Origin: Rebecca billardiae RCC1528
Taxonomy: Eukaryota; Protista; Haptophyta
Length of the DNA: 64,000 nucleotides
Direction: 5' to 3'
Assembly: GCA_965240325.2 (NCBI GenBank)
Contig: OZ251222.1
Span: 2,170,001 to 2,234,000 of the forward strand
Below are positions 1 to 17,427 of the stretch, in pieces (position 1 is the first letter of the stretch; each line of letters begins with the position of its first letter). The position numbers and the translations under genes were made by a program. Under the pieces are notes generated by a model. It did no database searches. It was not told where the DNA came from and saw only the letters and a program-made list of their open reading frames with translations.

Positions 1-98
1 AGCTGCGACCGGCCCTGAGAACGATTATAGCAGACGATGCAAACTAGATCATCGCCATCGGCCATCGTAAATCGTTCTCAAAGCAGACTCAACAAGCG

Positions 99-1241
99 AT
101 GGCGCCCGGCGGCCCGCCCGACGCATCAGCCCGGGTGCATGTCCTCTACGTGGAGCGCGCCGAAGACCAGCGTGGACCAAGCGGCGCTCGCTCGGCTGGC
201 GTGCACCTCGGTGTCCCTGGCCGAGGCCCGTGCATCTGCGACGCGTGCGAAGGGGTCGCCGAAGTGTGGCGCGGCCGGCTCGACAATCTGCAGACGACGC
301 TGCGGATGTGCTGCGCGGAGGGCTCACTCTTCCGGCCTGAAGTGATGCAATTCGCGTGCGCGTCGCCGCGCGCGGGTCTTTTGTATGACATCCCTCGGCT
401 CGCGACGTGGATGAGCGCGCGCGGCTCGAAGAGGCCGACGGAGGCCCTGGTGATCGGGAGCGCGCTGCGTGTGGCGCGAGGTGAGCTCGAGCCGGGCGCG
501 TGCGGGATCTCGCACTCGCCGTTCGAGGCGTCGGACGACGGCGAGAGCGAGGGGATGTGGGCGTGGATCGCCCAGTTCGCGGCGGGCGTGCGCGCTCGCG
601 CGCGCGAGTCCGGCGGCGTGGCCGTCTCCCTCGTGCTCGACAAGAAGGGCGAGGTGCTCGCGCCCTCGCACACCGCGGGCGTGCTCTCGGGCGCGCTCGC
701 TGCGAGGAGCGCGCCAATGCCCACCGACCTCGTACTGGTGATCGGCGGGCCCTCGGGCGTGCCACGCGCCTGGAGCGAGCGGCTGGCGTCCGCGCTGGGC
801 AAGCCGCTCCTCGCCGTGGCGCTGCGCGGCGGGCTGCAGCACTCGTATGCAGCGCTGCTCGACATGCTGCTCATGCACGAGCGCGGCGAGCTCCTGCCCC
901 TCGTGCGCGACCGGCTTGCGTGCCCGGCCGAGCGGCGCAAGCGGTGGCGCCAAGCCGAGCATGAGCTGCGGCGCGCGTGGCTGGCGTGCCTGACGGGCGG
1001 CGAGGCGCACGCGCGGGAGGGCGATGCGCTCGATGCGGCGATCCGCTCGCACGAGGCGTGCATCGAAGCGCTCAAGCGACTCGCGCCCGCGGGGGCGGGG
1101 CGGGGACAAGCAGCGTCGGTGCCAGCTGTGGCCGAACGCGGGGCGAGCGTCAGCGGGTCGGCCTCCGCCCCGCGCCAGAAACGGCGCCGCGGCGATGGCA
1201 ACGACGGCAAACGTCAGCGCCGCCGCCCCGCGGCGACCTGA
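99..1241 (+). CDS. SPOUT-family methyltransferase, TrmY/DUF358-like
   Basis: Single-exon 380-aa ORF with ordered motifs GRLD, RPTE..AL, GI..PFE, VLDKKGE, LVIGGPSG, VALRGGLQHS matching the SPOUT knot layout of TrmY; basic NLS-like C-tail (KRRR, KRQRRR). Confidence 0.55.
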   Translation: MAPGGPPDASARVHVLYVERAEDQRGPSGARSAGVHLGVPGRGPCICDACEGVAEVWRGRLDNLQTTLRMCCAEGSLFRPEVMQFACASPRAGLLYDIPRLATWMSARGSKRPTEALVIGSALRVARGELEPGACGISHSPFEASDDGESEGMWAWIAQFAAGVRARARESGGVAVSLVLDKKGEVLAPSHTAGVLSGALAARSAPMPTDLVLVIGGPSGVPRAWSERLASALGKPLLAVALRGGLQHSYAALLDMLLMHERGELLPLVRDRLACPAERRKRWRQAEHELRRAWLACLTGGEAHAREGDALDAAIRSHEACIEALKRLAPAGAGRGQAASVPAVAERGASVSGSASAPRQKRRRGDGNDGKRQRRRPAAT

Positions 1242-1597
1242 CTGATGATGGGGGCCCCACGACTGCCAATTCGCCATGCATCGCACGGGCGCCGCCGACC
1301 GAGAGGACTGAGGACGGGAGGTTGCGCGTTACTAAGACGACTGAAGACTCGTCCGAGGAGGCGATCGGCGGCTCGGGCTCGCCTTTCCGTGGCGTCCGTC
1401 GGTGGACGGGTGGTCCCCGCTCATCGGCTCGGGTAACCGAAGAAAAAACGACCGTCCGCGCCATTCCGACCGTCATCTCACGTTCTCATCATTTCGCGAA
1501 TAAGTAAAAGTTACCCGCATACTACTAGGCCCGTCCCAAATCTGCTCGTGGCGAAGGGGCGGGCGCTGTCGGACGTGCCCGCCGCCGGCGCGTTGCG

Positions 1598-4515
1598 ATG
1601 CGCGCCATGCACCTCGCGCTCACCCTGGCGGTGCTGGCGGTGCTGGCGGTGGCCGGTGCCGATCAGCCGATCGGCCGCTACTCCCATTGCTCGGTCCTTC
1701 TCGGGGACAAGGTGTACACATTTGGAGGTGTGCGGCGAGCGCGGCGCGAGGGCCGCGCCTGTGGGCGCCGAGATGTGCAGGGCGCGCGTGCGCGCCGTGC
1801 GCGCCGAGTTCGCGCGTTCTCTCAACCTGATTCCGCCCGTACCTTTGGACCCTGCCTGCCGTGCGCGGCGCAGGCCGTGGCTTTGCCGAGGAGGACTCCA
1901 AGCGCACGCTCATCCTCTTTGAGTGCGCGCTCGCCCATGCGAGTACCGCCGCGGCGGCGCGAGTGCGTACGGGCCAGAGCCCACGTTCCCGGATGGGCTC
2001 CCCCAGGCCGTGCGTGCTCACCGCTCGCCCCTCCCCATCGATCACGCCCGTCCGCGCAGCGACGTGTGGATGTTCGACACGGTCACCGCCGAGTGGTCCG
2101 CGGTCGAGATCGAGGGCGAGATTGCGGGCGGGACGGGGCCGGGCCCGCGGTCGTCGCACTCGTGCGCGAAGGTGGGCGCGAGCGAGTTCTACATGTTCGG
2201 CGGCATGTCCGCGGACGACACGCGGCAGCAGCTCAAAGACGACCTCTGGCGCTTCCGGTTGACCACGCCGACGGCGGGCTGGTGGGAGGAGGTCGCGACC
2301 GGCGGCTTTGCGTGGGACAGCATCAGCGAGGGCGTCGCACGCCCGGGCATGCGCTCGGACCACACGCTCGTCGCCGCGCCGGACCAGGAGGAGCTGTACC
2401 TGCTCGGCGGATGCAACACGCGCGTGGCTCGGCCGCTCGCCTGGCGGCTCAACCTCAACGCCGACAAGTGGGAGCCGCTGCCGATGGGCTCCTCGCCCGG
2501 CGTGGTCGACGCGTCGGCCGGCGCGGAAGACCCAGATGCCGCGCAGCACGAGCGCACGACCTATTTGCTCGACTCCGCGCGGCTGGGGCTGCGGGCGCCG
2601 TCCAGCCGGTGCGCGCACACCGCGTCGCTGTACGACGGGGACATCCTCGTCTTCGGCGGCCGCGTCTCCGTCACCGTGAGCGGCGACGGCTCGAGCGACG
2701 AGATGTGGTCTTCGCTCGGCGACATGTGGCGGCTCAGAACGGCCAGCTCTGGCGGCTTCAAGGTGGAAGCGGAGCTGGCCAACCGCACGGCGGAGAGCGA
2801 GGAGCTGCCCGAGCTGTGGTCCACCGTGGAGGACATCGACGGCCTGGACGAGAACGAGGAGGGCCTGCTCCTCAACCGCTCGGACCACGCGGCCCTCGTG
2901 CACGACGGCACGCTGTATGTGTTTGGTGCGCGCGCAGCGCACGGCGCCCGGCCGCGCGCGCCAGCCGAGGGGCGCGCCGCGCCGCGCCGTGCGGCGCAGT
3001 GCGAGACGCTTGGGCGCACCGCCTGGGTCGGGGGCGCGCGGGCGTGGGGGTGCGCGCGTTCTCACACGCGCGCGTGCATCGCGGCCGCGCAGGCGGGCTG
3101 TACACCGACCTCGACCAGAAGACGGTGTACATCATGAAGGACTTGCTCTCCACCAACCTCGCCTCCAAGCGCAAGTGGTCGCGGCTCGCGTGGGGCCCGA
3201 CGTGGCGCTTCGGGCACACGATGGTGGACGACCCGGCGCACAACCGGCTGCTGCTGTACGGAGGTGCGCGCGCGCCAAGCGCACTTGGCGCGCGCGCGAC
3301 CGCGAGCCGCCCCCCGGCCCCGCGCGACGCCGCGCCGCGCTCGCCCCCGTTCGCTCGGCTGGTCGCTCACTGGGTGGATGAGCGGCGCGCGCTCGCGCGT
3401 GCACTGCGCCGCTCTCTGCGCGCGCAGGCGCCGGCGGCATGGACGTCTTCGACGACATCTGGGCGTACGACTACGCGGCGGACGAGTGGGAGGAGCTCAA
3501 GCCCGACGAGCTCGGCGTCGAGTACCCCTCGCTGCTCATGTCCGTCCTGATGGGCGGCGCCGGCTTCCTGATGTGCATGTGCGTGATGGTGTCCCTGCTC
3601 TTCCTGCGCACCAGCCAGCGCTTCTCGTGGAACCGGCGGCACGGCCAGCTGCCGCCGACGCCGGTGGCGGCGCAGGCGACGCGCGGCGCGCCGCAGGAGG
3701 TGATCGACGCGCTGCCCGTGCTCAAGTGGGATGTCATCCGCTCCGAGATGGACGCCAGCGCGCCCGCGGCCGCGCCGACCGCGCCGGCAGCCGCCGCCGC
3801 GCCCGAGCGCGCGTCGACCGGCGCCAAGGCGCCGCTCACCTCGGCACCGGCGGCGACGGCGACGGCGCCCTCGACGAGCGGCGCGCCGGCCGCCGCGCCT
3901 GCCGACGCGACGTCGGTCGCCTCCACGCCGATGGACGCGGACGAGCGCTCGCTCGACGCCAACTACTCGTGCGTCGTCTGCCTGTGCGAGTTTGAGGAGG
4001 CGGACGACGTCGTGCGGCTGCCGTGCCGGCACATCTTCCACAAGGAGTGCATCCACAAGTGGCTGCACCAGGAGGGGAGCTGCCCGCAGTGCCGCTTCAA
4101 GCTCGGCGGCGGCGCGGACGACAAGGCCGACGCGCCCTCACCCGCGGAGGCAGAGCAGGCCGCGCGCGTCGACGCGGTGCGTGTTGAGCTCGCCGTGCTC
4201 GAGGCGGTCGACGCGGCGCGCGGGCGCGGCGCGGCCGGCGCGCGCGGCGCGGCCGGCGCGCGCGGCGCAGCTGGGCAGCGCGCAGCGGCGGAGGAGCGCG
4301 GCGCGGCCGATGGCGATGCGCCGCGGCCGCGCCCAACGGACGAGGAGGCCGGGCCGCCTCCGCCTGGGGACGCCGAAGACAGCGCAGACACTGCCACGGA
4401 CGCGCACGCCGGCGGCAGGCAGCCTGAGCGACGGCAAGCCGGCGTTGCAGTGCCAGGGCCTCGGGGATTCATGCCCAGGCTCTTCGACACGATGTCGACG
4501 CGCCGACGAGAATGA
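1598..4515 (+). CDS. Signal peptide-Kelch repeat-TM-RING-H2 protein (putative membrane E3 ligase), 5 exons
   Basis: Hydrophobic N-terminus; Kelch blades (RYSHCS..VYTFGG, PRSSHSC..YMFGG, RSDHTL..YLLGG, RCAHTA..LVFGG, RSDHAA..YVFGG, RFGHTM..LLYGG); TM LLMSVLMGG..VSLLFL; RING-H2 CVVC..CRHIFH..C..W..CPQC. Introns 1728-1873, 1923-2059, 2926-3092, 3264-3427 restore the frame. Confidence 0.85.
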
Positions 4516-4630
4516 CGACGCGACGGGGAGATATTTCGCACTGCTAAGACGATATAGCGCCAGGCTACTGAGCTAGGCTAGATAGGTATATAGGAGGCAG
4601 ACCACGGGCTGATGCGGGACGACGGACTAG

Positions 4631-6028
4631 TTACCAGCTTGCAAAGCCCCCGTCGCCGATGGCAGGCGGCAGGAGCTGCGCGAATGCGCTCGTCTCGTCA
4701 CCGGCGGTCATGGCACTGCGCTTGCGCGCTGCGTCGTCGTGCGGACGCTCGCGCAGAATCTCCACGCTGACGATGCCACTCGTCGATTGAGGGTCGTCGG
4801 TTGCGAGGGGCGGGGCCACCTGCTGTGCATGCTCGGGATCGGGCGCAGGAGTGGAGGCAGCCACCCCGCCATCACGCGCCCGCTTGGACGCCTTGCGCAG
4901 CTTCCCCGATTTGATGGCCTGCGGCTGCGGCTCAGCCGGGGGTGCAACGGCGACACTGGACTTGTCTGCCGAGGGCGCGCCCGCGTCCTGCTCACGGGCA
5001 GCTTCTTCGCGGCGCTCGCGCTTGCGTGTGCCGCTCTTGGGCTGCAGTGCATCGGCCGTCGGCGCGCGGCTTGACTCGGCACCCCGAGCCCGGGAGGCCG
5101 CCCCGCCCGGCCGCTCTGGAGCTGCCGGCTTGCGCACAGCTCGGGCGGCTGCGCCCGGCACGGCGGGGTCCTCGTCGCCCTGCGGCTTGCTCTCCTCGTC
5201 GAAGCGGATCTTCCGGTTCGCTGGCTCCCCGCTGCGCCCGCCGAGCGCGGCCATCTTGCTGCTGTCCAGGACACGCACGCGCGGCAGCAGCCGGCGCACG
5301 CGCTCCTGGTACGCGTCGTGCCCGCCATCGCACAGCGGGTTTGCGCGCAGCGTGAGGTTGCGTAGGCGCTCGAGCTCGCGCAGCGGCTCCAGCTGCTCGA
5401 AGGTGCGCAGCTGGTTGCCACCCAGATCGACCATCGTCAGCCGCGCGCACGCGGACAGGCTCGACGGCAGGGACGCGATCCTGTTGTCATTCAGTCTCAG
5501 CTCGACGAGCGTCGGTGGCAGCGCCGGCACGGTGCGCAGCGCGTTGTGCGAGAGCGAGAGCTTGCGCAGCTGCGCGAGCTTCTCAGCGCCCGCCACCTCG
5601 GTGATCTGGTTGCGCGAGGCGACCACGGTCGTGAGCTGCTCGAGCTGCTTGAGCAGGTGCAGATCGAGCCTCTTGAGCGCGTTGTCCGAGGCGATCAGCG
5701 CCTTCAGGTTGCGGCACGGGCGGAGGACCGTGCCGAGCGTGCCGATCCGGTTGTAGCTGACATTGAGCACGGCAAGCTTGGGCAGTCCGCGCAGCCCGTC
5801 GAGGGCGCGCAGCTGGTTGTGCTGAGCTGAGATCGTCTGCAGCTCGTGCAGCTCCTCGATGCCCTCGAGGCTTTCGAGCACGTTGTTGTCGAGCGAGAGC
5901 TTGTGCAGCCCGTGGCAGCAGGCCAGCTCGGACGCGTCGCTCACGCCCCGCCCACTCAGGTCGAGCTCCTCGATCTCCGCTGGCGGCCGCCCGGCGATCT
6001 CCGCGAGCTGCGCGGGGGTGGGCTGCAT
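4631..6028 (-). CDS. Leucine-rich repeat protein (SDS22-like repeats, LRRcap, low-complexity basic tail)
   Basis: About 9 LxxLxLxxN repeats, cap NPLC..YQERVRRLLPRVRVLD, RVxF-like KIRF; ATG at 6028. Confidence 0.85.
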   Translation of the reverse strand: MQPTPAQLAEIAGRPPAEIEELDLSGRGVSDASELACCHGLHKLSLDNNVLESLEGIEELHELQTISAQHNQLRALDGLRGLPKLAVLNVSYNRIGTLGTVLRPCRNLKALIASDNALKRLDLHLLKQLEQLTTVVASRNQITEVAGAEKLAQLRKLSLSHNALRTVPALPPTLVELRLNDNRIASLPSSLSACARLTMVDLGGNQLRTFEQLEPLRELERLRNLTLRANPLCDGGHDAYQERVRRLLPRVRVLDSSKMAALGGRSGEPANRKIRFDEESKPQGDEDPAVPGAAARAVRKPAAPERPGGAASRARGAESSRAPTADALQPKSGTRKRERREEAAREQDAGAPSADKSSVAVAPPAEPQPQAIKSGKLRKASKRARDGGVAASTPAPDPEHAQQVAPPLATDDPQSTSGIVSVEILRERPHDDAARKRSAMTAGDETSAFAQLLPPAIGDGGFASW

Positions 6029-6292
6029 CCTGGGAGCCGGTGGGCTGTCCACGCGGCAGGCCGGGACCGGTGACGGGGTTCCTCACGTCCGCGGCCTCGC
6101 TCCCAGTCTCCAGTCGTCGGGACCTCCCGGACCACGGCCAGATGAAATCACGACGATGAATCCAGCAGCTCGATGCCTCGACATTTTATTTTTTCCTCTG
6201 CGCAGAACGAACTCATTCCTCATCCCGCGGGAACAGCGCGCCGAGCATCACACTCCGAGTCACCTCCGAGCGGCAGGTGCCAAGCTCATGGC

Positions 6293-7114
6293 TCAAGCTC
6301 GCTTCCCCGACGGAGCTGTCACAGCCGACTGTCGGAACAGCGCGCGCCGGTAGAAGCGCAGCTCTTCGATCGACTCAAGGATGTCCGCCTTGGCGCGATG
6401 TCCTCCGCGCTTGCGTGGCGCTCGTCGCAGCGCACTTGGGTACCACCGGTGTGCCAGCTCGTTGATTGTGGAGACGTCTACGAGCCGCCAGCTGACGTGC
6501 TCCATCAGCGATGGCATGTACCTCTCCAGGAACTCCTTGTCCTTGTACACCGCATTGCCCGCCAGGTTGACGCACTGTGCGATGGTGTGCTGCTGCACAA
6601 ACCGGAGAAGCTGCTCCTCTGCCATCGCGAGGGTCGTCGTCGACTCGCGTACGCGCGTCGTGAGCCCAGACGCGCCATGGTGCTCCTTGCACCACTCGTT
6701 CATCCCCTCGATCACCGATTCGGGCTGCGAGACCACGATCTCCGGCCCCTCGATCATGCGCCCCAGCTGGCCGTCTGTGAGCACAGCTGCCACCTCCAGG
6801 ATGTGATCGGTGGTGGCGTCGAGCCCAGTCATCTCCAGGTCGATCCAGAGAAGCGCGCCCGACCCGAGCTTCTTCGGCGCTGGCCCATGACGCTCTGGCG
6901 CGGGTGCGTCGGCAGCCGGCTGGGGCCGCTCATCCCCCTCGTGGCAGCTGTTGCGGCTGCTGCCGCGCGCACCTGCGGGCGCGCACTCTGACGCAGCCAA
7001 CTCGGCGGAAGCGGCCTTCGCGGATGCGGCCTTGGCCGCGCGCGATGTGTACAAGATGGTCTCTCCCGTCTCCTCCTCGTCGTCGTCGAGGCTCAGGGCC
7101 GAGAAGCGCGACAT
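6293..7114 (-). CDS. REXO2: Oligoribonuclease (DEDDh exonuclease)
   Basis: WIDLEMTGLD, WCKEHHGASGL, LAGNAV..DKEFL, LVDVSTI.EL..RW, HRAKADILESIEELRFYR; ATG at 7114. Confidence 0.95.
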   Translation of the reverse strand: MSRFSALSLDDDEEETGETILYTSRAAKAASAKAASAELAASECAPAGARGSSRNSCHEGDERPQPAADAPAPERHGPAPKKLGSGALLWIDLEMTGLDATTDHILEVAAVLTDGQLGRMIEGPEIVVSQPESVIEGMNEWCKEHHGASGLTTRVRESTTTLAMAEEQLLRFVQQHTIAQCVNLAGNAVYKDKEFLERYMPSLMEHVSWRLVDVSTINELAHRWYPSALRRAPRKRGGHRAKADILESIEELRFYRRALFRQSAVTAPSGKRA

Positions 7115-7234
7115 CGCGATGACGTGCCGACAAGGCCGACGACGGGCGACCGGTCGCCACCTGCGCGTGCAACCAGCAACCTCGCTCCCTGCGAATTTGC
7201 CGCTATGGTACGGTACCGGCCGGGCGGGCGCAAG

Positions 7235-8962
7235 ATGGCGGCGGTCGGCGATGGTCGTCATCATCTCATCGCGCTCTCCCTACTGACCACGGGGGCAGCG
7301 GGCCTGCGGCTGCCGCGCGTGCTCTCGCACAACGCAGTCTTACCGCGCGCTCCGACCGTGCCTCTGCTGTGGGGCCACGCGGGCTCGCCCGGCGAGCGGG
7401 TCAGCGGGTTGCTGCTCGACGCTGATCGGAAAACGGTCGATTCTGCCAGCGCCGTCGTCGATGCGGATGGATCTTGGGCCGTCGCCATGTCGCCCCAGCC
7501 GCCATCGCTCGGGGCGCACACGCTGCGCGTCACTGCGCCATCTGACCCCGACGGCGTCACCCTTGAGAAGATCAGCTTTGGCGATGTGTGGCTCTGCTCT
7601 GGCCAGAGCAACATGGAGTTTCAAGTGCAGATGGCGTTCAACGCGAGCGCGGAGGTCGCGGCGGCGCAGCGGCAGGTGCGAGGGGTGCGCCTCTTCCATG
7701 TCGACCATGCCACTGCCGACGAGCCGCAGCCCGACGTGCCGTCGGCCGGCTGGCTCAGCCCGCACGATGCCGGCGCGCTCAAGTTCTTCTCGGCGGTGTG
7801 CTACATGACCGCGCGGCGGCTTTGGGCCGCGCTCGGCGGTCAGGTTCCCATTGGCCTCGTGGAGGCGGCGTACGGCGGGCAGCGGATCGAGACGTTCTCG
7901 TCGCCCGCGGCGCTCAACGATCGCTCGTGCGGAGGCACACGCGAGCCCGGCTCCGTCCAGCCGCTCCTCGCGCTCGATGCGGCGGAGCGCGCCGCCGTGC
8001 CGTCCGAGCCAGCCGTGCGCGCCGCCCTCGACAGTCCTGCGGGCGCCGCGCCAAATGGCGTGCTGGGCGCCGCGCGCCCGGCGAGCTCGCAGCTCTGGTT
8101 CGGCATGGTGCAACCTCTGCACCGCCTCGGGCTCGCTGGCGTCCTCTGGTATCAGGGGGAGGCCAACGCCGCCCAGCCCGAAGAATACGCGTGCAGGTTC
8201 CCTGCCATGATCGCGGATTGGCGTCGCGAGCTGCGGCACGCGCCGCCGCGCGCCAATGATGTCGCCAGCATGGCGTTTGTGTTTGTGCAGCTCGCCGCGT
8301 TCAAGCGCCTCGACTTCACGGCGCTGCGCGTCGCGCAGCTCGCTGCGCTCAGGCTCCCGGCGACTGGGTACGCCACGGCCATCGACCTCGGCGACGAGCG
8401 CTCGCCGTGGGGCCCCATCCATCCGCGCAGGAAGGAGGAGGTGGGCCGCCGGCTCGCGGCCGTGGCGCTACTGCTCGCGTACGGCCGGCGCGACGTGCCT
8501 GCGTCCGGCCCGGTGTGGGGTCGCGCCTCGCGCTTCCCGAAGCAGGACCAGTTCCTCCTTCACTTCGAGGCTGCGACCGCGAGCGGCCTCCACGCAGCCG
8601 GCACGCCTGGCTGTGACGCGTGCTGCAAGCACAGCCCGTTCGAGGCGCTGGTCGCAGGGGAGGCGTGGAAGCGCGTGCCGTTCAAGCTGGACGCTCCGAA
8701 CGGCACGGCGATCGTGCGCGGCGCGCGCGGCGCGCAAGCGCTGCGCTACGCCTACGAGGCCTACCCGCAGTGCGTGATTTACAACGGCGTGGGCGGCGCT
8801 GACAGCCATGCCGCGTTCGCCTCGAGCCCGTTCCGCATCGACTTCACTCGTGCTGACGATGCTGCGGCAGCATCATCATCATCATCGTCAGCATCAGCGC
8901 AACAGCAGTACGTATCGTCGGCCCGGCGGTATCGTAATCGACTAATCGTGTCGTCAGGATGA
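7235..8962 (+). CDS. SIAE: Sialate O-acetylesterase family (SGNH) secreted esterase
   Basis: Signal peptide; FGDVWLCSGQSNM, FSAVCY, PIGLV, WYQGEAN, FVQLA, DLGD..IHPRRKEEVGRRLA. Confidence 0.9.
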   Translation: MAAVGDGRHHLIALSLLTTGAAGLRLPRVLSHNAVLPRAPTVPLLWGHAGSPGERVSGLLLDADRKTVDSASAVVDADGSWAVAMSPQPPSLGAHTLRVTAPSDPDGVTLEKISFGDVWLCSGQSNMEFQVQMAFNASAEVAAAQRQVRGVRLFHVDHATADEPQPDVPSAGWLSPHDAGALKFFSAVCYMTARRLWAALGGQVPIGLVEAAYGGQRIETFSSPAALNDRSCGGTREPGSVQPLLALDAAERAAVPSEPAVRAALDSPAGAAPNGVLGAARPASSQLWFGMVQPLHRLGLAGVLWYQGEANAAQPEEYACRFPAMIADWRRELRHAPPRANDVASMAFVFVQLAAFKRLDFTALRVAQLAALRLPATGYATAIDLGDERSPWGPIHPRRKEEVGRRLAAVALLLAYGRRDVPASGPVWGRASRFPKQDQFLLHFEAATASGLHAAGTPGCDACCKHSPFEALVAGEAWKRVPFKLDAPNGTAIVRGARGAQALRYAYEAYPQCVIYNGVGGADSHAAFASSPFRIDFTRADDAAAASSSSSSASAQQQYVSSARRYRNRLIVSSG

Positions 8963-9894
8963 GACATGATCAGAGCTGGGGGCCGCCCGAGCAGTGCAGG
9001 CTGCATTATTGTATAGCGGGCATCACGTGTGACGCGGCTGCGGGGCGTCGTTGCACATCATGACATCAGAAGCATCATCAGTCGGCGTCATTGTCACGCG
9101 CATATATGTCGCCGATCCTCGTCATGACGATCTGCGTTCGACCGCCCAGCTGGGCCCAACCTCCACCGTGGACGCCTACTTGCGTGGAGCTGCGCGACGC
9201 CCACGCACCGCGTGCGCAAGGACACAGCTCGCGAGCGCGAGAAGCGGCGGAGCGAGACCGTCGGCGAGCGCTTCGGAAGGCCCACGCGCACGGTTTGCCC
9301 GCCCGACGTGCGCGGGCGTCGCGGCACGGGGGAGGTTGGGCCCCCGCCGCTCGAGCCCCCGCCGGCGTCGGGTCAGGTAGCTTGGTGCGTGTGCGGGTGC
9401 CTGGCGAACTTGCGGGCCGCGGACCGACCGAGCAAATCAGAGTATATATCAGTCCGCAGACTCAAGCTGCCCACGCCGTGGCGGAGAGATGGCGTGAGCG
9501 GGAGTCTGAGCTGCTTCATGAGCCGCGGGTGTCCCCAACGAGACAGCGCATCTCGCGCGAATAACGCCCCGGTGACAAGGCGCGGGTTGGGTGGCAAGTT
9601 GGGTTGTGGGCACCATCGTCGGCCAGGAGACTCGCCGCGATGTGAACACATGTGCACGCCGTACTGTACGTCTCCGAGCAGAGATGGAACGCCCGACCGA
9701 GGGGCCGGCGGCCGGTAGGCCGGCCAACCATTTCGTGTCCCGCATCCAGCCGCCGCCGGAGGACTCCGATGAGGCGTGGACGGATGACAAAAACTCATGC
9801 AACAAAAAGCCCGCCAGATCGTCACATCTCCGTCCGGTTGCTCAGCTCATCATCAGCAGGACCGCCCCGGCCCCTACTATCTCTTGATCATTAT

Positions 9895-11623
9895 CCCGTA
9901 GTCCGGCTTGTCTTCAAAATGTCTTCGGCCGGAGTCGACCGTTGATCACGCCTATATACGGGCCGGGATGGGGTCGGGATGGCCGTTGCGTCCACCGCAG
10001 CTGAGCTGGCGTCAAGGCCACCAGCGGGGTGTGACGGCCATCATGCGATCTGGTCGCTCCAGGGGCCGGCATCAGCAGGAGGTCTTCAGCGTACGCGTCG
10101 ACAGCACTCGGCCGAGACGGGACGACCGGCCGGGGCGACTCGTGGGCGCCTGACAGGGCGCGTCGAGGCGAGCGGCGCGCTCGGAGGCGCAGGCCAGGCT
10201 GCCTACACTCCACTCAAGGGCGTGCCGGCCTTGCAGCTCCGCCCTCTCAGCATCATCACCGGTCGGCTCGCGTGTCACGTGCACGGCGGCGTTCACGGCG
10301 TTGGGAACGCGCGGCCCGTGCGAGCTGACCGAGGCCTGGCCGCGGCGGAGAGGGGCGCGTGTCGCACGACATATCGCAAGAGACCCCACGGCGTGTGTGC
10401 TGCTGCCCGCGCCGCGCCATCGCGCGCCGCAGAGCGTGCGTCGGGCCGTCGTAGCGGCGGTCGCGACATCGTCCAATCTGGGCGCGAACGACGTGGCCAG
10501 GCGACGGTTTGTCGGGGAAAGCAGTTACCTGTTTCGGTAACAGACGACGGCATCTTGGCGCGAAATCCCGCGTTCTGACCGCAGCATGGCGGACGCACAG
10601 CGTGCAGCACGCTACAGAGACAGGCGCTGCGTGCGGCCGCACACGGTCGTGAATGTCACCTCTTGCAGCGGGCGGGCGCGACATTTGTTGTGGTCGTAGT
10701 ACTTCTCGTAGCACTCGGGGCATAGGTGGACGCGGCAGCCGGCGCACGCGCGCCTGGTCTGACGGATGCTCCCGCCAGGGTCAGTCGGGTGGCTGGCCGG
10801 CTTGGACCTCCCCTTGCGCATGGAGGAGTCGCCCGTGATGTCGGCGTGCTTGAAACACTGCACGCAATCACTCAGCTGCGAGAGGAACTTCTCACTGCCT
10901 GGCTCGCGCCGCACAGATGCGGCTTGCACCAACTGGCATCTGCGAGGTCGGGCAGAGACGACCGGCGCACGCGGCTTCCGTCCTGCGCGGAACGCACCCA
11001 CGAGGAAGCATGGCGCGCACGCACGAGTGAGGCATGCGCGCTGACCGGCTTGCGCGGATGCGCGCGCGCCGAGCGCGCGCTGCAGCTCACCCGGCAACTT
11101 TGGCATGAAGTGTGGGATGTCCTCCCCGGTGGCTTCCATGTGCCTGTGCGTGCCGTGCGCAGTGGTCTTACGGCCGAGCGTCGTCTGCCACCTCGTGCTG
11201 TAGTGAACGCCGTCACGCCCAAGCTCCTTGTGCCGCGCGCACACGCACTCGAATACAGCCTTGGCGGCCAGTGCCATCAGCCCCACCAGGTGCCAGAAGA
11301 TAGAGCGCTGCCAGCGCTCGCCGACTCGATTCTGACGCACGTGCATGCCGCTCTGCTCCCTGTCGATCCTGTCGATGACGCCCATGCGCCTCGCGTACAC
11401 GCGCTGGGCGATGAACGAGGAGAAGTAGCGGTACTTGCCCTCTTGTTTGTCCCAGCGCCGTACGCTCACCGGCGCCTTCGACTGGTACGCTGTGTACAGC
11501 AGGGTGAACATCTTCGTGTCGCGCCAGACAGTGGCATACAGCAGCGCCCGGCAGCCGGCGATAGCACAGCTAGCAGTGCGCCGCCAGCCGCGCGCGATGC
11601 ACTCGCTCACGCCGGATAGGAAT
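9895..11623. repeat. Left arm of long inverted repeat
   Basis: Reverse complement of 13671-15399; mirror ORFs have identical translations and coordinates sum to 25294. Confidence 0.95.
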
Positions 11624-13670
11624 TCCCAGAACGGCCACGTGATGCGGTCGCCCGCGGCCGGACTCGCAGGGCGCTTGGACTTGGTCGGGCCGACGATCCA
11701 CGTGCCCCTCTGCGCGAGCCATACAGCCACTGCAACGGTGACAAACCACGAGTCGGCGAACAGGACGAACCCGCGGTTCCAGGTGTTCAGCGTGAACATC
11801 TTCTGGATGAGCTGCAGCACGTAGCCACCCTCGCCACCCGAGCCCGGGACGAAGATCTCCCACGCACACGGGAAGTGCCTCTCGTCAGCCAGCAAGATGT
11901 TCTTGATCCCCCAGCGCACGGGCTTGCGAGGGATGTACACGAGCAGTTTCGACGCGCGCTTCGAGAGGCAGCGGATCATCTGCTCGTCCAGAGTCAGGTG
12001 CTGGAACCAGTTCCACGCCGCCGCAGCACGTCCAAGCAGCGCGTCGTTCAACCACCTGATCTTGCGCAGCGGATCGCCTTCGAACTCAGACGAGAGCGGG
12101 TCCATGAACGATAGCTGAGCCAGCAAGCACAGGAACCTAGGCAGGCGGGTGCCCATGGCGGCGCGCGAGCGTCGGCGACAGCCGAGCTAGATGAGGATAG
12201 TGGCGCGGTGTGTTTCCACGCGCGCGCGGGGTGGCTCGATGACGCTGCTGCGCGCACCGCTTTTGCGTCATCGCCTCGGCGATATCAGGCACGAGGTGGT
12301 CCTGTGTCCAGTAGTAACCGAGCTGAGCCAACGGGCTGACCCCCATGCGCAGCATCAGGCCGATGATCACGAGAATCTCCCAAGGTGTCGCATCCACCCA
12401 GTTCGTCACGCGCTGCTTCGCCTCGAATCTCAGTCTCTCTGGGTCCTCACGAGACAATAGTCTCCACCTCATCCGGCCATCAGGCCCCGTGTCCTGCGCG
12501 CGCGCTCGGTGTCGATAGCAGTGTCGGAAAATCAGGCATTACATTATCAGCGCAGTGCGAGTCCGCGGCCGCGCGCATTGCGCACGACAGTCGAAGCAGC
12601 GAGCCGGCAGCAGCCAGTCGGCGCATTAGGCAGCCGAGGCGTGCGGGCGAGACCGTGCCGCGCACGGCGAGGATGACACCCGCGGGGTCGTCCTTCCTTT
12701 CCTCTCGCTGGCTGACGGCGCGCCCATGTCCTATCATGGCGACGCCCCGTCGCAGCCACCCGTCGAGGACGGTCGTGCGCGGCGCTCAACCAGCCGCGCG
12801 CGCGCTGACGCTGGCTACTCACCTTCACCATCCATTGCTTCGCACGCGCGTTCGTGCAGTTCGCGATGTGCTGCAGGATCTCCGGCGTGAAGAAGAAGAG
12901 GAAGCACGCGAGCAGTACATCCTCGGGGTCGTTGTCGTCGGACACCTTCTGCGGGTCTGTCTCGTGGGCGATCAGACCCATCGTCGTGATCAAGAAGAGC
13001 ATCATGGCCCTCGTTGGCCCAGGGGCGTTCGGACCGCGGCCCGCCCTGAATGCCGGGCGCTGCCGCTCGATCTCGGCTTCGGCGTCGTCGACGCCACCGT
13101 TCTCGGTCGGCGCGGCCGGCGGACACTCGTCCACCTCCGTCCAGCCGCGCGGCAGCTCGGCGCTCGTGGGCTGCGCGCGTTCGGGGCGAGCGCCGGGCTG
13201 GGCGTGCCCTGCCCCTGCACCCGACGGCGCGGCGCCTGCGCCGCGGTGCGGCTGCGCGACCGGCTGCTTGAGGTCGCGCAGCATGCCCACGCGGCGCTGC
13301 TTGTTGCCCCACAGCTCCCCGTCGGCCACGACGATCGCAGAGCCTCGCGCGCGCGGCAGGCACGTGCTCAGCGGCCCACCGCACATAGTGGGCAGCGGGT
13401 CCACCCGCGGCTGCTTCGCGCGGCCGCGGCTGCTGCTGCGCTGCGCGCTGTTGCCGCTGCCGCCGCCGCCGCGGCGCGCGATGACGTCGAGGCAGATGTC
13501 GAGCGAGAAGCTCGGTGCGCCGCCCGACGCCAGCTCGGTCGCCGCCTTGTACATGTCCGTCTTGTACTTGAACGCCGTCTCAGCGGTCGCGCGCTTGGTG
13601 AGAAACGCCGGCCACTGCTGCCCCGCGCGAGCCACCGCCTGCTCGAGCACGGCGAATTGGCGCTCCGTCT
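10612..13670 (-). CDS. piggyBac transposase (DDD), spliced, apparently 5'-truncated
   Basis: FFFTPEILQHIANCTN, DPLRKIR, LDEQM, YIPRKPVRWGIK, FADSWF, WRDTK, MGVIDRID, C-terminal Cys-rich CxxC..CxxC..LC..C..H. Introns 12494-12822, 12137-12257 and probably 10983-11090. Frame is open up to the arm junction at 13670; first in-frame ATG 13554. Confidence 0.88.
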
Positions 13671-15399
13671 ATTCCTATCCGGCGTGAGCGAGTGCATCGC
13701 GCGCGGCTGGCGGCGCACTGCTAGCTGTGCTATCGCCGGCTGCCGGGCGCTGCTGTATGCCACTGTCTGGCGCGACACGAAGATGTTCACCCTGCTGTAC
13801 ACAGCGTACCAGTCGAAGGCGCCGGTGAGCGTACGGCGCTGGGACAAACAAGAGGGCAAGTACCGCTACTTCTCCTCGTTCATCGCCCAGCGCGTGTACG
13901 CGAGGCGCATGGGCGTCATCGACAGGATCGACAGGGAGCAGAGCGGCATGCACGTGCGTCAGAATCGAGTCGGCGAGCGCTGGCAGCGCTCTATCTTCTG
14001 GCACCTGGTGGGGCTGATGGCACTGGCCGCCAAGGCTGTATTCGAGTGCGTGTGCGCGCGGCACAAGGAGCTTGGGCGTGACGGCGTTCACTACAGCACG
14101 AGGTGGCAGACGACGCTCGGCCGTAAGACCACTGCGCACGGCACGCACAGGCACATGGAAGCCACCGGGGAGGACATCCCACACTTCATGCCAAAGTTGC
14201 CGGGTGAGCTGCAGCGCGCGCTCGGCGCGCGCGCATCCGCGCAAGCCGGTCAGCGCGCATGCCTCACTCGTGCGTGCGCGCCATGCTTCCTCGTGGGTGC
14301 GTTCCGCGCAGGACGGAAGCCGCGTGCGCCGGTCGTCTCTGCCCGACCTCGCAGATGCCAGTTGGTGCAAGCCGCATCTGTGCGGCGCGAGCCAGGCAGT
14401 GAGAAGTTCCTCTCGCAGCTGAGTGATTGCGTGCAGTGTTTCAAGCACGCCGACATCACGGGCGACTCCTCCATGCGCAAGGGGAGGTCCAAGCCGGCCA
14501 GCCACCCGACTGACCCTGGCGGGAGCATCCGTCAGACCAGGCGCGCGTGCGCCGGCTGCCGCGTCCACCTATGCCCCGAGTGCTACGAGAAGTACTACGA
14601 CCACAACAAATGTCGCGCCCGCCCGCTGCAAGAGGTGACATTCACGACCGTGTGCGGCCGCACGCAGCGCCTGTCTCTGTAGCGTGCTGCACGCTGTGCG
14701 TCCGCCATGCTGCGGTCAGAACGCGGGATTTCGCGCCAAGATGCCGTCGTCTGTTACCGAAACAGGTAACTGCTTTCCCCGACAAACCGTCGCCTGGCCA
14801 CGTCGTTCGCGCCCAGATTGGACGATGTCGCGACCGCCGCTACGACGGCCCGACGCACGCTCTGCGGCGCGCGATGGCGCGGCGCGGGCAGCAGCACACA
14901 CGCCGTGGGGTCTCTTGCGATATGTCGTGCGACACGCGCCCCTCTCCGCCGCGGCCAGGCCTCGGTCAGCTCGCACGGGCCGCGCGTTCCCAACGCCGTG
15001 AACGCCGCCGTGCACGTGACACGCGAGCCGACCGGTGATGATGCTGAGAGGGCGGAGCTGCAAGGCCGGCACGCCCTTGAGTGGAGTGTAGGCAGCCTGG
15101 CCTGCGCCTCCGAGCGCGCCGCTCGCCTCGACGCGCCCTGTCAGGCGCCCACGAGTCGCCCCGGCCGGTCGTCCCGTCTCGGCCGAGTGCTGTCGACGCG
15201 TACGCTGAAGACCTCCTGCTGATGCCGGCCCCTGGAGCGACCAGATCGCATGATGGCCGTCACACCCCGCTGGTGGCCTTGACGCCAGCTCAGCTGCGGT
15301 GGACGCAACGGCCATCCCGACCCCATCCCGGCCCGTATATAGGCGTGATCAACGGTCGACTCCGGCCGAAGACATTTTGAAGACAAGCCGGACTACGGG
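13671..15399 (+). repeat. Right inverted arm: duplicate of transposase 3' part (13671-14682) plus 3' terminus
   Basis: Mirror of 9895-11623; carries only the third catalytic Asp and the Cys-rich domain. Confidence 0.95.
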
Positions 15400-15522
15400 T
15401 TATTGAGACTCAGAGCCGTCCGTGATGTACAACGGTCTTCGCGTTGCACCCTCCACCGGCCGTCGTCCGGGGCGGGCAGCGCACCGTGCGCCTCGACGAG
15501 GAGGAAGGAACCGCCCGCACTG

Positions 15523-17427
15523 ATGGACGAAACCAGCGCCGCGGTGAAGCTGCTTCGGCGCAGATCGGCGCGAGGTGACGCGCGTGCCACGTGCCTTCTG
15601 GCTGATCGCCTCGTACGTGGAGACGGTGTCGCTCAGAACGAGCGCGAGGCGACGCGCCTGTACAACATCGCCGCCGATCGCGGGCTTGCGGAAGCTCAGC
15701 TCAGACTTGGCGACTTCAATCATCGGGGCCTGTTTGGGCTGGACCGAGATGTCATCAATGCGGTGCGCTGGTATCGGCTGGCGGCTGAGCAGGGCAACGC
15801 ATCAGCGCAGTACAATCTGGGCTTGTGCTTCCAGATGGGCGAGGGCGTGCCGCAGGACTGTGCCGAAGCGGTGCGCTGGTACCGGTCGGCGGCCGAGCAG
15901 GGCCATACGAGAGCGCAGTACAATATGGGCATGTGCTGCAAGGACGGCGAGGGCGTGCCGCAGGACATGGCTGAAGCGGTGCACTGGTTCCGGCTGGCGG
16001 CCGAGCAGGGCTTTGCTGATGCGCAGTGCAATCTGGGCGGGTGCATTGCGAAGGGCGCGGGCGTGCGGCGGGACGTGGCCGAGGGGGCGCGCTGGTATCG
16101 GCTGGCCGCCAAGCAGGGCTGCGCGAACGCGCAGTACAATCTGGGCATGTGCTGCCACAAGGGCGACGGCGTGCCGCAGGACTGGGCGGAGGCGGTGCGC
16201 TGGTACCGGCTGGCAGCCGAGCAGGGCCACGCAATGGCGCAGGACAATCTGGGCGTGTGCTGCGAGAAGGGCGAGGGCGTGCCGCAGGACTGGGCGGAGG
16301 CGGTGCGCTGGTACCGGCTGGCAGCCGAGCAGGGCTTTGCGAATGCGCAGTACAATATGGGCGGGTGCTGCGCGAACGGCGAGGGCGTGCCGCAGGACTG
16401 GGCGGAGGCGGTGCGCTGGTACCGGCTGGCCGCCGAGCAGGGCCATGCGGATGCGCAGTACGAGCTGGGCGTGTGCTGCACGAACGGCGAGGGCGTGCCG
16501 CAGGACTGGGCGGAGACGGTGCGCTGGTACCGGCTGGCCGCCGAGCAGGGCTTTGCGAATGCGCAGTACAATCTGGGCATGTGCTGCCAGAACGGCGAGG
16601 GCGTGCCGCAGGACTGGGCGGAGGCGGTGCGCTGGTACCGGCTGGCAGCAGAGCAGGGCCACGCAATGGCGCAGAACAATCTGGGCATGTGCTGCCACAA
16701 GGGCGACGGCATGCCGCAGGACTGGGCGGAGGCGGTGCGCTGGTACCGGCTGGCAGCCGAGCAGGGCCAGGCAACTGCACAGTGCAATCTGGGCGTGTGC
16801 TGCGAGAAGGGCGAGGGCGTGCCGCAGGATGTGACGGAGGCGATGCGCTGGTACCGGCTGGCCGCCGAGCAGGGCCATGCGGATGCGCAGTACGAGCTGG
16901 GCGTGTGCTGCGCGAACGGCGAGGGCGTGCCGCAGGACTGGGCGGAGGCGGTGCGCTGGTACCGGCTGGCGACCGAGCAGGGCTTTGCTAATGCGCAGTG
17001 CAGTATGGGCTTGTGGTGCGAGATTGGCGGGGACATGGCCGAGGCGGCGCGCTGGTACCAGCTGGCTGCTGATGGTGATCAGCCACGTGCAATGTCCCAG
17101 CTTGGGCGGCTGATGCTGGCGGGCGAGGGCGTGGAGCGCGATGTGATTGAGGGCGCACGGCTGCTGCGCCGTGGGCACGAGCTCGACAGCACTCTCGACC
17201 CCTGTGTAGTGCTCATCGCCCGGTTTGCAGGGGTGCGCGAGGTCGTGTCCAAGTGCTGCCTCGTGTGCGCCAAGACACGGCCTGGCTTGAAGAAGTGCGA
17301 CCGATGCCATGTGGCAGCGTTCTGCTCACACGACCACCTGGTGCGCGCGTGGAAGGCACACAAACCGCACTGTAAGGAGTGGCGGCATCAGGGACACTCA
17401 GACCCCATCAACGGCAACGAGGTCTAA
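15523..17427 (+). CDS. Sel1-like repeat protein with C-terminal MYND zinc finger
   Basis: About 14 36-aa repeats AQYNLGxCCxxGEGVPQDWAEAVRWYRLAAEQG; MYND CLVC..KKCDRC..FCS.DH...W..HKPHC; intronless. Confidence 0.92.
   Translation: MDETSAAVKLLRRRSARGDARATCLLADRLVRGDGVAQNEREATRLYNIAADRGLAEAQLRLGDFNHRGLFGLDRDVINAVRWYRLAAEQGNASAQYNLGLCFQMGEGVPQDCAEAVRWYRSAAEQGHTRAQYNMGMCCKDGEGVPQDMAEAVHWFRLAAEQGFADAQCNLGGCIAKGAGVRRDVAEGARWYRLAAKQGCANAQYNLGMCCHKGDGVPQDWAEAVRWYRLAAEQGHAMAQDNLGVCCEKGEGVPQDWAEAVRWYRLAAEQGFANAQYNMGGCCANGEGVPQDWAEAVRWYRLAAEQGHADAQYELGVCCTNGEGVPQDWAETVRWYRLAAEQGFANAQYNLGMCCQNGEGVPQDWAEAVRWYRLAAEQGHAMAQNNLGMCCHKGDGMPQDWAEAVRWYRLAAEQGQATAQCNLGVCCEKGEGVPQDVTEAMRWYRLAAEQGHADAQYELGVCCANGEGVPQDWAEAVRWYRLATEQGFANAQCSMGLWCEIGGDMAEAARWYQLAADGDQPRAMSQLGRLMLAGEGVERDVIEGARLLRRGHELDSTLDPCVVLIARFAGVREVVSKCCLVCAKTRPGLKKCDRCHVAAFCSHDHLVRAWKAHKPHCKEWRHQGHSDPINGNEV
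15760..17010 (+). repeat. 108-bp coding tandem repeat (Sel1 units)
   Basis: Near-identical blocks ggcgtgccgcaggactgggcggaggcggtgcgctggtaccggctggc recur every 108 nt. Confidence 0.9.

Follow-up and report, generated by a model that had tools for sequence, protein, structure and literature searches.

How a transposon comes to be bounded by two copies of one and the same end, and whether it can have moved in that form, is the question raised by an element at positions 9891 to 15403 of a 64,000-nucleotide stretch of the haptophyte alga Rebecca billardiae RCC1528 (GenBank assembly GCA_965240325.2, contig OZ251222.1, positions 2,170,001 to 2,234,000 of the forward strand; here called the window). 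The piggyBac transposon is a workhorse of genome engineering, and the reason that its left and right ends differ is still debated. A sequence-only reading of the window had proposed a piggyBac with two identical 3' ends that transposed as a unit, and had seen in it a naturally symmetric-ended element using a nonpalindromic target. We find that the locus is a real, single-copy, rearranged piggyBac-type transposon, one damaged copy and not a new kind of element. For its origin, we favor the reading that the rearranged molecule integrated through its two 3' ends at one TTAT site, to which we assign a probability of about 0.45.

A repeat search over positions 8500 to 17000, combined with reading of the ends, showed a perfect inverted repeat with arms at 9895-11623 and 13671-15399 (1729 nt, 100% identity, no mismatch) on either side of a unique spacer of 2047 nt (11624-13670). 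The search itself returned arms of 9888-11623 and 13671-15406; the overrun is partly matching flank and was trimmed by reading the ends. The left flank reads CTTGATCA-TTAT and continues into the element as CCCGTAGTCCGG..., and on the right, the element closes with ...CCGGACTACGGG and is followed by TTAT-TGAGACTC. The TTAT tetramers at 9891-9894 and 15400-15403, both read directly, are identical. A mirrored flank would show ATAA on the right, so the pair is a direct 4-bp repeat, which rules out a simple fold-back that copied the flank. The G+C content of the window is 67 to 80%, with A or T at about 16% per base, and from this base composition the chance of a TTAT match at the second flank is below 1e-3. 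These results bear out two points of the sequence-only reading: an inverted copy of the last 1729 bp has taken the place of the 5' part of the element, and TTAT is a direct repeat on both flanks.

The two tips (CCCGTAG... and ...CTACGGG) are the same 3' end twice, identical to the very last base, and the element has no native 5' end. Each tip begins with C and has the CCC...GGG form of a piggyBac terminal repeat. The ends depart from the asymmetric ends of piggyBac in forming a perfect 1729-nt inverted repeat, and the target duplication has the 4-bp length of the piggyBac TTAA duplication yet reads TTAT. The reconstructed target, TCA-TTAT-TGA, is near-palindromic. We rejected TCA...TGA as the true element ends, since the 4-mers outside them (TTGA and GACT) do not match.

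From the 3' tip to 13670, the locus holds 3776 bp of native element, which is followed by the inverted copy of its own last 1729 bp. Because the transposase open reading frame (ORF) and its Pfam match are continuous over 11623/11624, that boundary is native and only the 13670/13671 junction is new; there, native position 13670 is followed directly by native position 11623 read in reverse complement. The left arm (9895-11623, minus strand) is the native 3' part and contains the tip, a noncoding subterminal region of 717 nt (9895-10611), and C-terminal transposase coding sequence from 11623 down to the stop codon at 10612-10614. The spacer (minus strand) is the native center of the element, and the right arm (13671-15399, plus strand) is the inverted duplicate of the left. 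Within the subterminal region, about 315 nt (10140-10454, mirrored at 14840-15154) have 71% identity to part of a long repeat on contig 19, which occurs twice (L010:5283-5637 and L011:5041-5400) and holds a 1193-amino-acid ORF with no Pfam match. This stretch could be a captured fragment or a shared noncoding module.

By its predicted transposase, the element is a member of the piggyBac superfamily. A 514-amino-acid ORF on the minus strand (12156 to 10612) contains the piggyBac transposase domain PF13843 (DDE_Tnp_1_7), matched over profile positions 80 to 344 of 349 with an E value of 3.8e-20 and 72.9 bits (cut-off, 22.4). In a six-frame scan for this domain across the genome, an assembly of 72 Mb in 41 contigs that we treated as intron bearing, the element scored 74 bits. 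An upstream ORF (12472 to 12137) matches PF13843 positions 28 to 81, and the exon that carries this match lies at about 12258-12415 in the spacer. The two ORFs are joined by a GT..AG intron at 12137-12257, and by manual reading, its removal gives ...MTQKR followed by FLCLLAQLSFMDP..., in frame. The transposase gene has at least one such intron, and we searched its exons one by one and not as a joined spliced protein model.

Residues D57 and D135 of the 514-amino-acid ORF (codons at 11986-11988 and 11752-11754, in the spacer) align with D268 and D346 of Trichoplusia ni (T. ni) piggyBac chain 6x67_C, where the residue numbering of the DDD triad is that of PMC7351741. Together with the PF13843 match, these alignments confirm the earlier assignment of the element to the piggyBac type. 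The third Asp, D262 (MGVIDRID; about 11371-11373), is conserved with PB-B (MGPVDRFD), the only other piggyBac family in the genome; alignment to D447 gave no match, and the region had no match in the PDB. A Cys-rich tail (C-x2-C ... C-x2-C-x4-C-x2-C ... H; about 10678-10866) is likewise conserved with PB-B, at 41% identity over residues 381 to 497, and it matched neither a PDB entry nor any Pfam model, the zinc-ribbon model included, at E values up to 10. Since the spacer, with the DDE core, has the first two Asp residues and the arm has the third Asp and the Cys-rich tail, only the last 337 transposase codons and the 3' tip are repeated, in inverted orientation, in the right arm.

Upstream of these exons, the minus-strand frame from 13668 to 12547 stays open as far as the junction at 13670, and about 12820-13668 is a remnant of a long N-terminal exon. 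A 765-amino-acid plus-strand ORF that crosses the junction was considered as a gene and rejected, having no Pfam match and being antisense to real exons in the part that lies outside the arm.

PB-B is an apparently complete relative. There are two full copies of 4509 bp, 99.7% alike and differing at 10 sites. The copy on contig 37 (609634-614142; L012:635-5143) has TTAT on both flanks; the copy on contig 19 (839666-844174; L013:667-5175) is flanked by CAAA and GTAA with no clean duplication, as if it had been rearranged after insertion. PB-B has 65 to 72% DNA identity and 47% protein-core identity to the window element and has the same exon layout, with a long N-terminal exon and a Cys-rich tail. 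The N-terminal exon of PB-B is very long, at about 620 amino acids, and has no Pfam match. The terminal repeats of PB-B are short and imperfect, at 13 bp (CTCACAAC.../...TTGGAGG). A word-based protein search matched only PB-B of the same organism, with no match for the N-terminal exon, and a cluster look-up gave no further relatives.

Residue 8 of the window frame at the junction aligns with residue 262 of the long PB-B exon, and in a translated DNA comparison, the junction falls near PB-B position 760. By comparison with PB-B, the window element lacks about 0.76 kb, comprising the 5' end, a short leader, about 255 N-terminal codons, and probably the promoter. The junction cuts the N-terminal exon at roughly residue 255 of the PB-B equivalent. 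The sequence-only reading, which placed the cut of the transposase frame at 13670, was right in its coordinates and description. The proposal of a naturally symmetric-ended piggyBac went too far, because the locus is one damaged copy that lacks about 0.76 kb at its 5' side and does not represent a trait of the family; PB-B has ends that are short, imperfect, and different.

PB-B also has an internal-deletion derivative that lacks positions 1140 to 3075. One copy on contig 15 (1279197-1281774) is flanked by TTAA on both sides, and one on contig 1 has ATAA at its right flank and an altered left tip. With the full copies, these make four informative insertions for the family and its derivative (TTAT/TTAT, TTAA/TTAA, a right flank of ATAA, and CAAA/GTAA), and the TTAT duplication on contig 37 has the same orientation relative to the gene as in the window element. 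Because PB-B copies show both TTAA and TTAT duplications, we read TTAT as a tolerated variant of TTAA. These flanks indicate that the lineage uses TTAA-like sites, with TTAT as a near-canonical variant and no new specificity, so the nonpalindromic target had been given too much weight as a distinct trait. This is in line with a survey of 157 piggyBac-like elements that found rare non-TTAA duplications, TTAT included (PMC5381638). By our own reasoning from the mechanism in PMC7351741, a direct 4-bp repeat of any sequence leaves complementary overhangs on excision, so a nonpalindromic target is in itself no bar to seamless repair. On contig 1, two of the PB-B derivatives lie tail to tail, 10.9 kb apart (984898-986898, L047:2899-4899; and 997785-1000355, L046:1286-3856). 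They are 99.3% alike; in one, the terminal ~570 bp on the 3' side are missing, and in the other, the 3' tip is altered. The pair looks like the product of aberrant (alternative) transposition.

We compared the assembled structure with Logan short-read contigs (k = 31) from runs of the same organism, retrieved by exact protein-product look-up. Contig L033 (ERR14847148, found also in a second sample) covers exactly 9895-11623, and its path breaks at both arm boundaries, as expected if each arm end has two contexts. Contig L034 (ERR14847150) covers 13848-15429 in reverse and passes from the 3' tip through TTAT into 26 nt of the right flank. The spacer is covered by L035 (ERR14847148) and L036 (ERR14847151), both spanning 11594-13670 with a 30-nt overlap with the left arm; one of these runs also holds a 3714-bp contig identical to PB-B. 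Since these contigs match the arm, the tip with TTAT and right flank, and the spacer, an assembly artifact is unlikely.

The ends of these contigs also carry information. L035 and L036 stop exactly at 13670, without a 30-nt overlap into the right arm, whereas the assembled path alone predicts a stop at 13700. L032 serves as a control: it stops at PB-B position 4181, directly before a site (4182) at which the two PB-B copies are not the same. The control shows that contigs stop one base before a variant, and it follows that the reads hold a second path onward from 13670. Against the assembly, the spacer contigs show G>A at 11671 and C>T at 11828, and L036 also shows G>A at 13541, where the two contigs disagree; all of these are transitions. 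Their density, 2 to 3 per 2 kb of spacer, compares with 0 to 1 per 5 to 9 kb in the left flank. These results hint at a second, probably paralogous version that continues differently past 13670, most simply a parent with a native 5' part. A search of the assembly with the spacer found no such version with another 5' continuation.

At the other end of the element, L034 stops exactly k - 1 = 30 nt past the tip (15429), a hint that TTAT and the right flank have a second predecessor base in the reads, such as that of an empty allele. If the site also had a normal copy, the two forms would have at least the terminal G in common, and the contig would then break before 15429. We treat all inferences from contig ends as leads and not as proof. 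In the left flank, L037 and L038, from two runs, both end at 9249 in a GC-rich low-complexity stretch, and L037 carries a 12-bp insertion relative to the assembly somewhere in window positions 1 to 9249; these could reflect a heterozygous indel or an assembly difference.

The simplest route to the second arm may have been one fold-back or template switch on a copy that was being cut by transposase or replicated. The inverted copy replaces the ~0.76 kb with the 5' end, the gene start, and probably the promoter. In the favored reading, a single TTAT was then cut in a staggered way and the transposase linked both of the identical 3' ends to it, giving the duplication. Three observations speak for integration in this form. 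The terminal repeats of PB-B are imperfect, so a switch primed from a 5' repeat should leave mismatches at the tip, and the perfect tips favor integration; the near-palindrome TCA-TTAT-TGA fits one contiguous target; and the stop of L034 at 15429 gives the hint of an empty allele. There is also an engineered precedent, since T. ni piggyBac with two 63-bp right ends (RE63/RE63) is excised by wild-type transposase and is both excised and integrated by the hyPBase transposase (PMC7351741). It is a tentative proposal, to which we give somewhat less than even odds, that this algal piggyBac lineage has a transposase able to integrate elements with the same 3' end on both sides.

Several observations weigh against integration through two 3' ends. 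With wild-type T. ni piggyBac, elements that have two right ends (RE/RE) fail to integrate (PMC7351741), and piggyBat is inactive on them (PMC11707139). The direct TTAT on both sides would equally be left by remodeling of a normal insertion in place. The arm, the spacer, the 246-nt end, and the 27-nt tip have no other match in the genome, making the element single copy in the assembly, which contains neither a parent nor a second copy of the 13670/13671 junction. Such a single copy offers no second insertion of the rearranged form to prove mobility. We found no empty site among paralogues of the flanks or among the retrieved short-read flank contigs: the right flank belongs to a Sel1 gene family whose paralogue similarity begins about 30 nt from the insertion, with none spanning the site, and the left flank has one paralogue, at 66%, that does not span it. 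The sign of an empty allele comes from a single contig end in a low-coverage run, and no retrieved short-read contig crosses 13670/13671. Movement in the present form would be established by two or more insertions with the same rearrangement, or by an empty site that matches, and these searches found neither. The sequence-only reading was right to set aside a fold-back that copies the flank; its proposal that the element transposed as a unit is plausible and unproven, as the element is single copy and other routes give the same end state. The other copies with the same junction and the parent with a native 5' end for which it suggested a search are not in the assembly.

The most serious of these other routes is that a normal copy with one 5' and one 3' end inserted at TTAT, was later cut by transposase, and was remodeled in place when sister-chromatid repair went wrong. 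A strand from the right flank would have switched to the inverted 3' end, copied 1.7 kb, and joined the left strand at 13670, yielding the same flanks and the same single internal junction. This route does not require that symmetric ends can be used, an ability missing from canonical piggyBac and piggyBat in cells (PMC7351741, PMC11707139), and microhomology-mediated template switching in gap repair is accepted as a source of rearranged DNA transposons (PMC3814204). Repair-derived forms are known in the lineage, as in the PB-B derivative without positions 1140 to 3075. The single-nucleotide polymorphisms in the spacer contigs that end at 13670 can be accommodated too, since the other version could be an unrearranged allele. 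However, the spacer variants are far denser than the left-flank differences and better fit a paralogous than an allelic version. Priming from a PB-B-like 5' repeat should leave mismatches, whereas the right tip matches the 3' tip to its last base, and with a normal copy at the site sharing the terminal G, L034 should end before 15429, yet it ends there. On balance, we consider remodeling in place rather unlikely, though a real contender.

Two separate insertions in inverted orientation, each at a TTAT, followed by deletion of both 5' parts and the host DNA between them, would also make both outer tips true 3' tips. Inverted, tail-to-tail PB-B derivatives 10.9 kb apart do exist on contig 1, and TTAT/ATAA is a recurrent target of PB-B, which makes matching flanks less improbable than for a random 4-mer. 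From the PB-B target mix, a same-strand TTAT at both outer flanks still has a chance of only about 0.15 to 0.25. This route needs three events and does not sit well with arms that are 100% identical, with the near-palindromic TCA and TGA outside the TTATs, as from one site, or with the finding that the assembly has no other copy of the family of the window element; we regard it as improbable. An assembly artifact, in which the contig took in a chimeric or fold-back long read and the locus truly holds a normal element, is very hard to credit. A perfect 1.7-kb inverted repeat is a structure that chimeric long reads can make, and the short-read spacer contig stops short of 13670/13671. However, the flanks are unique and unmirrored, the transposon tip is exactly where the repeat stops, contigs from three runs have their breaks precisely at the two arm boundaries (L033), for which each arm end must have two contexts, L034 joins the 3' tip to the right flank, and the inverted junction cannot come from a misjoin through the repeat.

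Whichever route produced it, the present copy is probably nonautonomous, because its transposase is truncated at the N terminus and without a promoter. If transcribed, the locus would be predicted to form a 1.7-kb hairpin RNA.

The insertion lies close to a host gene. A Sel1-repeat and MYND zinc finger gene (15403-17427, plus strand; PF08238, E = 5e-140, and PF01753) is not part of the element, which lies about 20 to 120 nt upstream of the likely start of this gene. The gene has 12 Sel1 repeats with a 108-nt period and a C-terminal MYND domain, and its family has at least 35 copies, of which contig 5 carries many and contig 17 a tandem array of three. On the left, a 585-amino-acid ORF (7205-8959) has a SASA (sialate O-acetylesterase-like) domain, according to a precomputed Pfam tag on a Logan contig, and an RNase_T gene and a leucine-rich repeat (LRR) gene lie upstream of it.

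In cells, integration of an element with two right ends takes a hyperactive mutant, and a natural element with two 3' ends in a clean duplication would be a ready test case for the tolerance of symmetric ends by wild piggyBac transposases. If the element did integrate in its present form, the need for left/right asymmetry seen in cells with T. ni piggyBac and piggyBat would not be universal, and one-step fold-back derivatives could seed foldback families or families resembling miniature inverted-repeat transposable elements, as well as hairpin-RNA loci that silence a family. The locus illustrates how an autonomous element could plausibly begin to turn into foldback-type derivatives, and it is a candidate source of hairpin RNA against its own family, by analogy with Mu killer of maize. 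If it was remodeled in place, it would be an ordinary by-product of repair.

Compared with known piggyBac-like elements (PBLE) such as T. ni piggyBac, the window element shares the PF13843 domain, the Asp residues aligned to D268 and D346, a tip that starts CCC..., and a 4-bp TTAA-like target duplication; the third Asp that follows and the Cys-rich C-terminal tail, both conserved with PB-B, are probable further parallels. It differs in having two identical 3' ends in 1729-nt arms in place of short asymmetric ends, TTAT in place of TTAA, introns in its gene, a tail that does not match the Pfam zinc-ribbon model, and, judged by PB-B, a very long N-terminal extension of which the first ~255 residues are lost. 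PB-B itself is a normal element, with both ends and short imperfect terminal repeats, and has a derivative with canonical TTAA. The closest counterpart in its ends is the engineered RE63/RE63 piggyBac (Chen et al. 2020, PMC7351741), where two right (3') ends also bound the transposon; the case described here is natural, has arms of 1.7 kb against 63 bp, and is no more than a candidate for mobility.

Two rearranged plant elements offer further parallels. Mu killer, like the window element, is a natural locus in which part of a transposase gene is duplicated in inverted orientation and one terminal repeat is present twice; for Mu killer, a long hairpin RNA has been proposed and silencing has been shown genetically (PMC3440606); it belongs to the Mutator superfamily, and it is this genetic demonstration that sets it apart from the window locus. 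Ac/Ds composite insertions (bioRxiv 10.1101/2020.01.07.897926) combine a target duplication, transposon termini, inverted duplications, and an internal repair junction, as seen here. They belong to the hAT superfamily and are bounded by one 5' and one 3' end from two nearby elements, with flanking host DNA included, whereas in the window element both ends are 3' ends of one element and there is no host DNA inside.

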